From positions 305,206-369,205 of the forward strand of contig RHPI01001202.1 in the NCBI GenBank assembly GCA_009103225.1: a stretch of DNA of 64,000 nt, written 5' to 3'. Origin of the DNA: Chlorokybus atmophyticus (Eukaryota > Plantae > Mesostigma and Chlorokybus algae). The position numbers and the translations under genes were made by a program. Positions within the stretch are counted from its first letter, which is position 1. Every line of letters begins with the position of its first letter. Below, in pieces: positions 59,901 through 62,900 of the stretch. The notes beneath the pieces were generated by a model, which had not been told where the DNA came from, searched no databases, and saw nothing but the letters and a program-made list of their open reading frames with translations.

Positions 59901-62900
59901 CCCTGTCCCCACACTTGATGACGATTTCGAGGCTGAGGGAGGATATAATGAGTTGTTGTGGAGTAGCATTCGTGGCGGGCGGATATCCACGCGATGCGGG
60001 AGGTAAGGGGTTGGGGTTGGGTGGGTATTGTGTGGTAATGTGTGTTTACGGTTTCCTTGTTGTGTCGGGTATACAGTGCGAGTGGGCAGCAGGCGCTAAC
60101 GTTTGATGAGCCCGTTGATATGGGCGAGCGGTATGCGGCCACGCGGTTTGTTGATGCAACCAACTATGCCAGCGTGCGCTTCAATCTTGCCCTCGGCTGG
60201 CAGGTGTGACATTGACCTTCGCGTGTGCACGTGTGTGCATGCGCGTGTGTGCTGTAGGCGCATTTGATAGACCAACTCTCTTTTTCTGTGTATTGGTGCA
60301 GGATGCGAGTGGGGGCTCTGATAGGTGCGACAAGGTGGGCCCCGCGCAAGGCGTGGTGTTCCAATACGGCGTGTTGAAGACCCAAGGAGGGCGCGTGCTC
60401 ATCGCCGGTACGTGCTTTACAGCATGAACCCCATACACATTGAGAGGCACTGGTGTGATGTGTTCTCACCCTCTGTACGCACATGCAGACGCGGGCTCAT
60501 CACGTGCTTCCCTATCAATGAGCTTTCCCTACCCCTCCGATTTTGGCCCCGTGCAGGCAATAGACACGTCCTCCTCCTCCTCTTCCTCCTCCTCTTCATA
60601 CTCGTTCTCAGCGAGTGATGCACCCGCCTCGGCGCTGCCCTTCCTTGGGCCCGCCGCAGATATCGACGTGACGGCCGTCGACATCGACTGGGTCACCGTG
60701 CTGGATATTAAGAGCCAGGATGCGAACAACAAGCCGGGCTTTGTCATGTACGAGGCCGCTCTACCCAATGCAGCCCGCAACCAAGCCGTGTCGTTCAGGT
60801 ACAGTGTGGCAGCAGTTACAATGCTACGTGCATGTTGGGTTTTTGTTTGAGCGTGCTTACTTATGTACATGCTGCCACACGCGCACACGCACACACACAC
60901 ACACACACACACGCGCGCGCGCGCGTTTGCACATACACAGGTGGGTGCAGCCATTCCATCACACGCAAGATCACTGGGCTTTGGATGGCGTGAAGGTGCC
61001 TTACGAGTTGTTAGACAATGTGGCGCTCCCTTCAACGTACTCTTCGTGGCACGCGTGCACATCCCCGACACAATATAACAACTTGACGGACGGCCGACAC
61101 GTATTCGCTGCACGCGTCAAGCAAGTTAGCTCGGAGGTGGCGAGTGTTCCCGCCACGCACACGTGGAGCGTGGACACGCTCCCGCCCTCGTGCACAATCG
61201 CCGATCCGCGTTCGCCGATCACGGGGGATCCCGCCGTCTCGATCCCGATCGCGTTCAGCGAACCCGTCTCGGGTATGAGCGTCGCCGATATCGCCGTCTC
61301 GGCCACGCCGTTGCCTTCCGCCGACACAACATACCTCGCGCAAGAGTTTGCTAGCGCAGATCAGGCACGAGCCTCACTCGCAGGCTCGAGCCTCACCTTC
61401 CACCCTTACCGAGGCGGATACCGAGGGTGCGTGACACAACAACGGACCGTAAGTCCACCCTCTCCTCAACACGCGCGCGCGCTCGCGCTCAACGACGATA
61501 GCTCCCTTTATGTTGGGTTCGAGGCCGGAGCGGCCGTCCGCTTCTACAACAAGCGTTACGAGGGCGTGTATGTCGGGAGCAATGGCTACATCACGTTCGG
61601 GTCGCCGGACTCGACAAGCTTCGTTAGCGTGGACTCGCACTTCTCGCTGCCACGTGTGTCGGCACTCTTGTCCGATATCAACCCAGAGCTCGGCGGGAGC
61701 GTCACTGTCGAGCAGGATGAGCGCAGGCTCGCCATCACGTACACCAACATGTTGGAATACCGACACGCTGTCGGGAGCACGTTTCAGGTTGAACTCTTCT
61801 TCGATGGCCGCATTCGCATCACTTGGGCCCAGGTGCGACAACATAGTTTAAGCGCTGCCACATGTGGGTGTTGATGTATGTTGACTGCATGCACACAATG
61901 TCTGCAGGTGGAAGCATCCAATGCGCTTGTGGGCATTTCCCCCGGCTTCAACAACCCACACTGGAGTGAAACCAACATTGCAAGCCTTCCCTTGTGCACA
62001 GTGGTATGCATTGCTGTCACTCACGCATCCACACCCACACAACCACACACGCCCATGTTTACGCACTTTTACGCGCACATGCGTATACACGTGCGTGTGA
62101 CAGCGCGCACGCACATGTACACGCATGCACGCAAGCATGCACGCACGTATGCATGTGCTACACACGTGCATGCATGCACACCCTTACACATACACACACA
62201 GATGGGTAGCGTGCCGTGCGCGGCAACATCTGTGCGTGGCAGCGGGCGCGAGTTTGTTGCGAGGGTTGCCCTGTGCGCGGGGCCGGGACAGTACCGCATC
62301 TACGTGAAGGGCGGGCGTGTCCGCGACGCCGCCGGCAACACTGCCGCCTTAAGCAACGTCGTCACCTACGAACACAGTACGTCGTTGGACATTGTGCGCG
62401 TGTGCGTGTGCGTGATGTTGTTCAAGTTGTACTTGTTGCTCAAGTGTTATTGTATGGCAGAGAGGCCTGCTGTGGCGGCCGCAATCGCAGCGCAAGCGAG
62501 CTTCAAGTTGGATGCTACCGATTCAACAACAGGACCTGATTGCGAAGCGCTGCCTGCGGGGTCAAAGTGCGAGTACTTTGGGGACACGCCGGGCTTCTGC
62601 GATTGCCAGCGCAGGTTTGCACACCATTGCAGTGCGTGCGTGTGTGCGTTCGTGTGTGTGTGTGTGTAACTTTTCCCCCTCTCTGTGGCACAGGTGCGTG
62701 CCAGCGGTGTCATTCCTTTCTAGGTTGGGTTCGGCTCTTTGCGACGCGGATCTCGATTGTGAGGAGCTCGCGCATGACTGCGGGGACTGCGGCGTGGGAG
62801 GAGCAAGCGCCAGCAGGGAGTTGTGTCAAAAGCAAGGGCAACCAGGTGCGTATGCATATGCATGCGTGCACATACACCTCAAAGTTTTAGCAGACTGAAC

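Follow-up and report, generated by a model that had tools for sequence, protein, structure and literature searches.

A reelin-subrepeat-like domain nested in an Ig-like repeat of a Chlorokybus atmophyticus subtilase

Can a protease of a green alga carry a domain of the kind that builds animal reelin? The question is raised by a subtilase gene of Chlorokybus atmophyticus, located in a 64,000-nucleotide stretch of contig RHPI01001202.1 (assembly GCA_009103225.1, positions 305,206 to 369,205 of the forward strand), which is referred to throughout as the window and numbered from its first letter. A first-pass annotation, made from the sequence, had described a reelin-subrepeat-like domain in this gene and had considered it informative on the origin of reelin. 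On balance, and with modest confidence, we favour the reading that the domain is a non-catalytic jelly-roll of the supergroup of MAM, InhA-like MAM and reelin-subrepeat domains, that reelin subrepeat B (Pfam PF21471) is its closest curated model, and that it is a probable tether or targeting module of a secreted S8 subtilase. Membership of the reelin family in the narrow sense is possible but unproven. Coordinates of the features discussed are collected in Table 1.

The subtilase gene and its transcripts

The gene was modelled by joining 17 exons by hand, and the resulting frame of 1348 amino acids contained zero internal stops. Fifteen of the 16 introns were bounded by GT-AG and one, intron 6 (58916-59011, CAG/GCAAGA), by GC-AG; this sole non-GT donor of the model lay outside the transcript-contig mapping and was placed solely from the GTSFAAPYVA...A motif and the uninterrupted frame. 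Exons 8 to 12 (59732-60002, 60077-60203, 60302-60407, 60489-60798 and 60941-61832) all had GT..AG borders and kept the frame open. The domain is split over five exons, as first proposed, and after joining, every peptide string that had been quoted for it was present under the correct exon numbers. A GT microsatellite of about 290 bp was seen in intron 7 (59346-59635), and many introns of the gene held shorter CA/GT or GCAC-type repeats.

Transcript evidence was drawn from one study, in which three runs covered the stretch, and contigs of two samples, X1 and X2, were mapped; their support for junctions covers 59236/59732 onward. The X1 contigs, from the organism's own run, were the same as the window except for one letter, the X2 contigs came from a diverged relative about 6% different, and introns were missing from both. 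That both samples are RNA is a guess on our part, but it would be difficult to account in any other way for contigs that lack introns and skip from GT to AG. Contigs of X1 (with 0-1 differences) and of X2 ran across 60002/60077, 60203/60302, 60407/60489 and 61832/61908, and further joints were found 3' of the domain, in X1 contigs at 62003/62202, 62376/62461 and 62845/62933, and for X1 and X2 jointly at 62614/62694. The 60798/60941 junction was backed by adjacent contig pieces, and at 59236/59732 a loose contig end before 59727 read the end of exon 7. The first-pass annotation had left these junctions to be checked in transcripts, and spliced contigs from both samples use those of exons 8 to 12: the gene is transcribed, and these exons are spliced as modelled.

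Comparison with X2 also bore on coding capacity. Among the 40 of 134 differences that were listed, 25 codon changes were synonymous and 11 were not; within the domain the listed changes comprised 12 synonymous and 5 not, two of these five falling in the Ser-rich loop described below. All length differences to X2 were multiples of three, including an in-frame 6-letter difference in the exon of the Ser-rich loop. The synonymous excess, together with length differences in threes, indicates that the stretch is coding and under constraint.

With respect to the protease itself, Pfam Peptidase_S8 (PF00082) matched exon 4 with 53.9 bits and exon 6 with 17.6 bits, and the motifs IIDSG, SHGTAV, CNSWGG and SGTSFAAP were all found. 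The product is a member of peptidase family S8, with an intact D157/H214/S383 triad and an oxyanion N275, and the protease is probably active. A mean Kyte-Doolittle hydrophobicity above 1.6 was reached by two sequence windows only, with starts at residues 7-21 and 306-310, the latter inside the S8 domain, and no C-terminal transmembrane segment was found by this measure in the 1348-residue protein. An N-terminal hydrophobic segment in a protein that lacks a C-terminal membrane segment points to secretion, and the subtilase is most likely secreted. The original description of the host as a secreted algal subtilase was in this respect well founded.

Similarity to reelin subrepeat B and nesting in the tail

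Exons and exon pieces were scored singly against the 24,736 families of Pfam. PF21471, Reelin_subrepeat-B, has a profile of 127 positions and a curated cutoff of 27 bits. Exon 9 (42 amino acids) matched positions 14-47 of this profile with 16.6 bits (E 0.0071), and the first 19 amino acids of exon 12 matched positions 106-126 with 12.0 bits (E 0.18). PF21471 was the only Pfam family matched by either piece, the two matches were collinear, and no MAM, InhA_MAM, F5/8C or CBM model was reported by Pfam on the matched pieces even at E values up to 10. A scan of NCBIfam gave nothing relevant. The rough sum of the two scores is 28.6 bits, each being below 27, and is not a whole-domain score. Exon 6 of the undoubted S8 domain scores little higher than exon 9, so that piece scores of this size are to be expected from a real domain cut by introns. 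Given the first match, the chance that the second piece would pick the same one of 24,736 families is about 7e-6, and for both matches together it is about 0.007 x (0.18/24736), a value not corrected for the roughly nine pieces tested.

When exon 9 was searched against PDB (177,635 sequences), the top match was reelin (6a48_A, E 0.07), with four subrepeat-like stretches aligned; the four other domain pieces had no matches by phmmer in the same database. At the junction of exons 11 and 12 the protein reads FRWVQP...HWALDGVKV, and the motif RW.QP..H...D.WALD.V.V is common to the algal domain and reelin repeat 8, with 12 identities to repeat 8 across the 23 residues of the algal C-terminal motif. 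The link to the reelin model is present in the sequence at both ends of the domain, and judged on these comparisons the similarity to reelin exceeds what chance would produce.

A chance or compositional resemblance, in a stretch that does not fold independently, would be suggested by the sub-threshold score of each PF21471 match and by the fact that about 30% of the stretch is of low complexity. Such an origin is very improbable in our estimate, as two independent pieces match the same family of 24,736 in the right order, synonymous changes dominate in the comparison with X2, and the domain can be aligned collinearly to a bacterial jelly-roll (see below).

The first-pass annotation had held that the domain follows reelin subrepeats nearly motif for motif. 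This stood as far as the PF21471 matches, the PDB match of exon 9 and the C-terminal motif are concerned, but did not extend to the Asp-box or to the arrangement of the animal repeat. No Asp-box (S.D.G..W, strict or loose pattern) was found in the whole 1348-residue protein, although one is a feature of the PF21471 family. Subrepeats of this family are further characterized by a jelly-roll of eleven strands that binds a calcium ion. A reelin repeat consists of subrepeat A, EGF and subrepeat B in tandem; here there is one jelly-roll only, and Pfam gave no hit to an EGF module in the flanking exons scanned. The two Cys that had been noted are present as C554 and C607. A Ser-rich stretch of about 68-80 amino acids lies between Y620 and W701. 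The part of the profile between the two PF21471 matches can be filled by 23 residues at the start of exon 10 and approximately 40 at the end of exon 11, which would place the Ser-rich loop where reelin has its Asp-box hairpin and accords with the earlier proposal that an insert has taken the place of the Asp-box. In an alternative alignment, to the bacterial profile described below, the hairpin position falls at amino acids 690-701, just before W701.

Compared with reelin subrepeat B (2DDU, 7LYU, 6A48), the algal domain therefore agrees in the profile matched at both ends in the right order, in the RW.QP...WALD.V.V motif, in its size once the loop is left out, and in an extracellular setting. 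It differs in having a Ser-rich loop of about 70 amino acids instead of the Asp-box, in being a single copy without partner subrepeat or EGF, in being nested in an Ig-like repeat of a protease, in its green-algal rather than animal host, and in PF21471 scores that come from single exons below the cutoff. No second copy of the domain was found within the window by tblastn.

The nesting was established with a profile of 79 Ig-like (immunoglobulin-like) repeat units, taken from P0001-P0003, the proteins that gave the best matches to exon 12. Collinear halves of one such repeat lie before and after the domain (Table 1), and the domain thus sits in a loop of an Ig-like repeat. No clear case of a split Ig-like repeat with a passenger was seen among the fetched proteins. 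In the tail, the catalytic domain is followed by a low-complexity linker and then by the reelin-like domain. Ig-like domains of the Big_12 type, a NIDO-like domain, a stretch rich in Cys and one final Big_12 complete the protein, with exon 12 giving Pfam matches to Big_12 (E 0.0012) and NIDO (E 0.093). By eye only, the two Big_12 halves flanking the NIDO-like domain appear to belong together, which would make a second nested arrangement in the subtilase. The Cys-rich stretch, amino acids 1152-1220 in exons 15-16 (62461-62845, +), holds 10 Cys in about 70 residues and had no Pfam hit.

This position bears on whether the domain serves chiefly to support the structure or folding of the protease, as the kexin and furin P-domain (PF01483) does, or as a stalk spacer, in either case without a ligand of its own. 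Jelly-roll domains that stabilize S8 catalytic domains are established for proprotein convertases, which counts in favour of such a role, as does the location of the domain in a stalk of Ig-like repeats; the order of jelly-roll after S8 catalytic domain is also the same. The P-domain, however, lies directly against a catalytic domain that depends on it to fold, whereas the algal module is nested and distant. It begins about 85 residues past the end of the S8-homologous region (at about amino acid 440), with half of an Ig-like repeat and about 60 residues of low complexity in between. It does not hold the direct post-catalytic position, and Pfam gave no P_proprotein (PF01483) hit on the domain pieces. 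This distance makes a stabilizing role of the P-domain type less likely, and we consider a folding aid or spacer an improbable account of the domain as a whole.

Bacterial relatives and the wider jelly-roll neighbourhood

Relatives were sought with the tail of the protein. Exon 12 was searched against 1.8 billion representative sequences, and no orthologue was found, nothing exceeded 44% identity, and none of 150 hits held the domain. A metagenome search with exon 12 found no relative of the domain, a homologue search with its residues 1-40 gave no candidate, phmmer of the algal domain against 273 fetched proteins returned low-complexity noise only, and an Atlas search with exon 9 was uninformative. 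The part of exon 12 that did attract matches was amino acids 122-296, for which there were thousands of relatives. Matches to the tail modules were mostly proteins of bacterial metagenome-assembled genomes or metagenomes (Sumerlaeota, Phycisphaerales), with one green alga, Tetraselmis, and the NIDO-like unit of the tail was common among proteins of bacterial metagenome-assembled genomes. An S8 domain close to the algal one was present in 5 of the best 150 exon-12 matches; the nearest S8 relatives were bacterial or metagenomic, and they also carry NIDO and jelly-roll domains. Since nothing exceeded 44% identity to exon 12 even though the proteome of Chlat1, the JGI name for the Chlorokybus atmophyticus genome, is part of the collection, the subtilase locus may be missing from the public Chlat1 gene set or wrongly modelled in it.

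A survey for proteins combining S8 with reelin-type domains had been suggested, and a profile search was seeded with the bacterial protein P0118 and the algal exons. Many bacterial proteins in its output carried both PF00082 and PF21471 in precomputed annotation. These were rejected as examples, as a rescan showed mostly short matches driven by the Asp-box (profile about 51-88) on small Ig-like domains; in the bacterial or metagenomic S8 proteins P0118, P0157 and P0182, too, the PF21471 labels were mostly of this short kind and did not mark the jelly-roll. Database counts of an S8 and reelin-subrepeat architecture are inflated by such labels. The algal matches fall on complementary parts of the profile and are not Asp-box artefacts. 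The survey did yield bacterial S8 proteins with InhA/MAM-type jelly-rolls weakly related to reelin, but most of the PF21471 labels fell away.

The true jelly-roll of these bacterial relatives is about 175 amino acids long and is recognized by Pfam as InhA-like_MAM (30.9 bits in P0118); that of P0159 also matches PF21471, over profile positions 26-126 with 21.8 bits. A profile was built from 20 such bacterial domains, and the algal domain was aligned to it with the loop removed. The alignment ran over 111 collinear columns (hhalign P 0.0034), and the hmmsearch score was reached by 6 of 2000 shuffles. In PDB the bacterial profile found nothing but immune inhibitor A, with E 0.008, and repeat 8 of reelin, with E 0.018. 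An AlphaFold2 model of the bacterial domain (pLDDT 92) matched the structures of meprin MAM, Eph ligand-binding domains, gingipain adhesin, InhA and reelin, all with E values of about 1e-6 to 2e-5, reelin repeat 8 being at rank 36 and repeat 3 at rank 50. With the bacterial domain about equally like each of these groups, the algal module would belong to a broad supergroup often found on extracellular proteases. Reelin subrepeats, MAM domains and the bacterial domains thus form one structural neighbourhood, which occurs on extracellular proteases in bacteria and animals.

Within this neighbourhood the InhA-like MAM domain (PF20773; on bacterial S8 and M6 peptidases such as P0118 and P0159; PDB 4YU5) is like the algal domain in being a jelly-roll on a secreted protease, in occurring in bacterial proteins that have the closest S8 domain and also NIDO, and in its weak collinear similarity. 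It is unlike it in that the Asp-box and, at the N-terminus, a D.DPGW motif are kept in the bacterial domains, pairwise comparison with the algal domain detects no similarity, and neither PF20773 nor PF00629 (MAM) was reported for any algal piece. The MAM domain of meprin and enteropeptidase and the cleaved-adhesin domain of gingipain, which belong to the structural neighbourhood of the bacterial relative, are likewise non-catalytic jelly-rolls on extracellular proteases. They differ in the class of protease (metallo, cysteine), and they are linked here through the structure of the bacterial relative and not through the algal sequence.

Several points weigh against our preferred assignment. Scoring by Pfam was confined to exons and pieces taken singly, each PF21471 match alone was under the 27-bit cutoff, and the three other domain pieces gave no hit at all. 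No homologue carrying the same domain was retrieved in the representative, metagenome, window or fetched-protein searches. As PF21471 also gives sub-threshold or motif-driven matches on unrelated bacterial domains, a score of about 20 bits is no proof of membership, and the similarity of the algal domain to the bacterial jelly-roll is weak.

Another possibility is that the domain is a true reelin subrepeat in the narrow sense, one whose split from the animal reelin subrepeats would be more recent than its split from MAM or InhA-type domains, so that the building block would predate animals and be present in Viridiplantae. That PF21471 is the only Pfam family matched, that the rough sum of 28.6 bits lies just above the 27-bit cutoff, and that the C-terminal motif closely resembles the one in reelin repeat 8 all argue for it, and according to a published survey brown algae have the InterPro Reelin family entry (PMC11827588). 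Against this stand the use of single-exon scores, the absence of both the Asp-box and the A-EGF-B arrangement, and the bacterial type of the other modules of the subtilase gene. Overall we regard narrow membership as unlikely. The value that the first-pass annotation had placed on the locus for the origin of reelin is correspondingly weakened, as the S8 relatives are bacterial and carry InhA/MAM-type jelly-rolls that are weakly related to the algal domain and to reelin alike.

Proposed role, feature coordinates and the rest of the window

Under the supergroup reading that we prefer, a jelly-roll module, its fold predicted from the sequence relationships above, would have been inserted in the tail of a secreted S8 subtilase, where a loop of an Ig-like repeat holds it, with the tail modules being presumably of bacterial origin. 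The Asp-box hairpin would be replaced by the long Ser-rich loop, a flexible excursion that is probably disordered and O-glycosylated. The module would take no part in catalysis and would probably tether or target the protease to a ligand, glycan or protein, that belongs to the cell covering or to a substrate. On extracellular proteases, jelly-rolls of the MAM and adhesin kinds mediate binding or oligomerization. By analogy with such domains on meprin, InhA, gingipain and bacterial subtilases, a binding role is the most likely one for the algal module, which would be a candidate means of directing a secreted protease in an alga whose habitat is mucilage packets.

A literature search turned up no account of a reelin subrepeat on a subtilase from an alga or a bacterium. 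Similar modules already sit on bacterial and animal proteases, and the algal case is a modest addition to these. More would follow if Chlorokybus, of the earliest-branching streptophyte lineage, had a bona fide reelin-subrepeat domain that scored above the Pfam cutoff, had reelin as its best structure match, grouped with reelin subrepeats and was nested in a bacterial-type subtilase; this is a tentative proposition, which we take seriously while leaning somewhat against it. If it is true, the building block of reelin would be an old mobile extracellular module of bacteria, algae and animals that was on a serine protease long before neuronal signalling. Should the family assignment hold, reelin-type subrepeats would reach the base of the plant lineage, in a new setting, within an Ig-like repeat of a protease and as a single copy that lacks the Asp-box. 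It would also favour an older extracellular pool as the source of animal matrix modules (reelin subrepeat, NIDO, MAM), used by bacteria on secreted proteases.

Table 1. Positions in the window of the subtilase gene and of the parts of its product
Feature	Position	Strand	Basis or remark
Whole subtilase gene	56877..63300	+	17 exons, 1348 amino acids, TGA stop 63298-63300; hand-built, open frame
Putative signal peptide, amino acids 1 to ~34	56877..56978	+	Kyte-Doolittle hydrophobicity
S8 subtilase catalytic domain, exons 3-7	57728..59236	+	Pfam Peptidase_S8 and motifs
Catalytic residues Asp157, His214, Asn275, Ser383	57792-57794, 58049-58051, 58232-58234, 58891-58893	+	Canonical motifs
N-terminal half of host Ig-like repeat, amino acids 495-521	59818..59898	+	Repeat profile 6-36, -0.9 bits, weak alone
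Reelin-subrepeat-like predicted jelly-roll domain, amino acids 527-756 (~230)	59914..60998	+	PF21471 matches, contig junctions
Coding pieces of the domain	59914-60002, 60077-60203, 60302-60407, 60489-60798, 60941-60998	+	
Ser-rich low-complexity loop, amino acids 622-689	60371..60655, including intron 60408-60488	+	Composition, 20 Ser/68
C-terminal half of host Ig-like repeat, amino acids 771-819	61041..61187	+	Repeat profile 39-87, 45.6 bits, E 3e-16
Big_12-type Ig-like domain with NIDO-like domain (~61305-61832) between its apparent halves, exons 12-14	61173..62376	+	Pfam
C-terminal Big_12-type Ig-like domain	62998..63225	+	Pfam Big_12, E 0.011 on exon 17

Elsewhere in the window, a phytochrome exon of plant type (2412-5084, +) encodes 890 amino acids with GAF, PHY, two PAS and HATPase domains and is 100% identical to the EukProt entry jgi/Chlat1/7288/Chrsp58S06918 (scaffold 58). 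At 22952-24763 (+), two adjacent open reading frames with a retroviral-type aspartyl protease, reverse transcriptase and RNase H represent the pol of a long terminal repeat retrotransposon, split by a frame change. An open reading frame of 410 amino acids (52329-53561, +) with a WSD (DDT-associated) motif lies immediately 5' of the subtilase and suggests that a gene for a chromatin-remodelling factor has an exon there.

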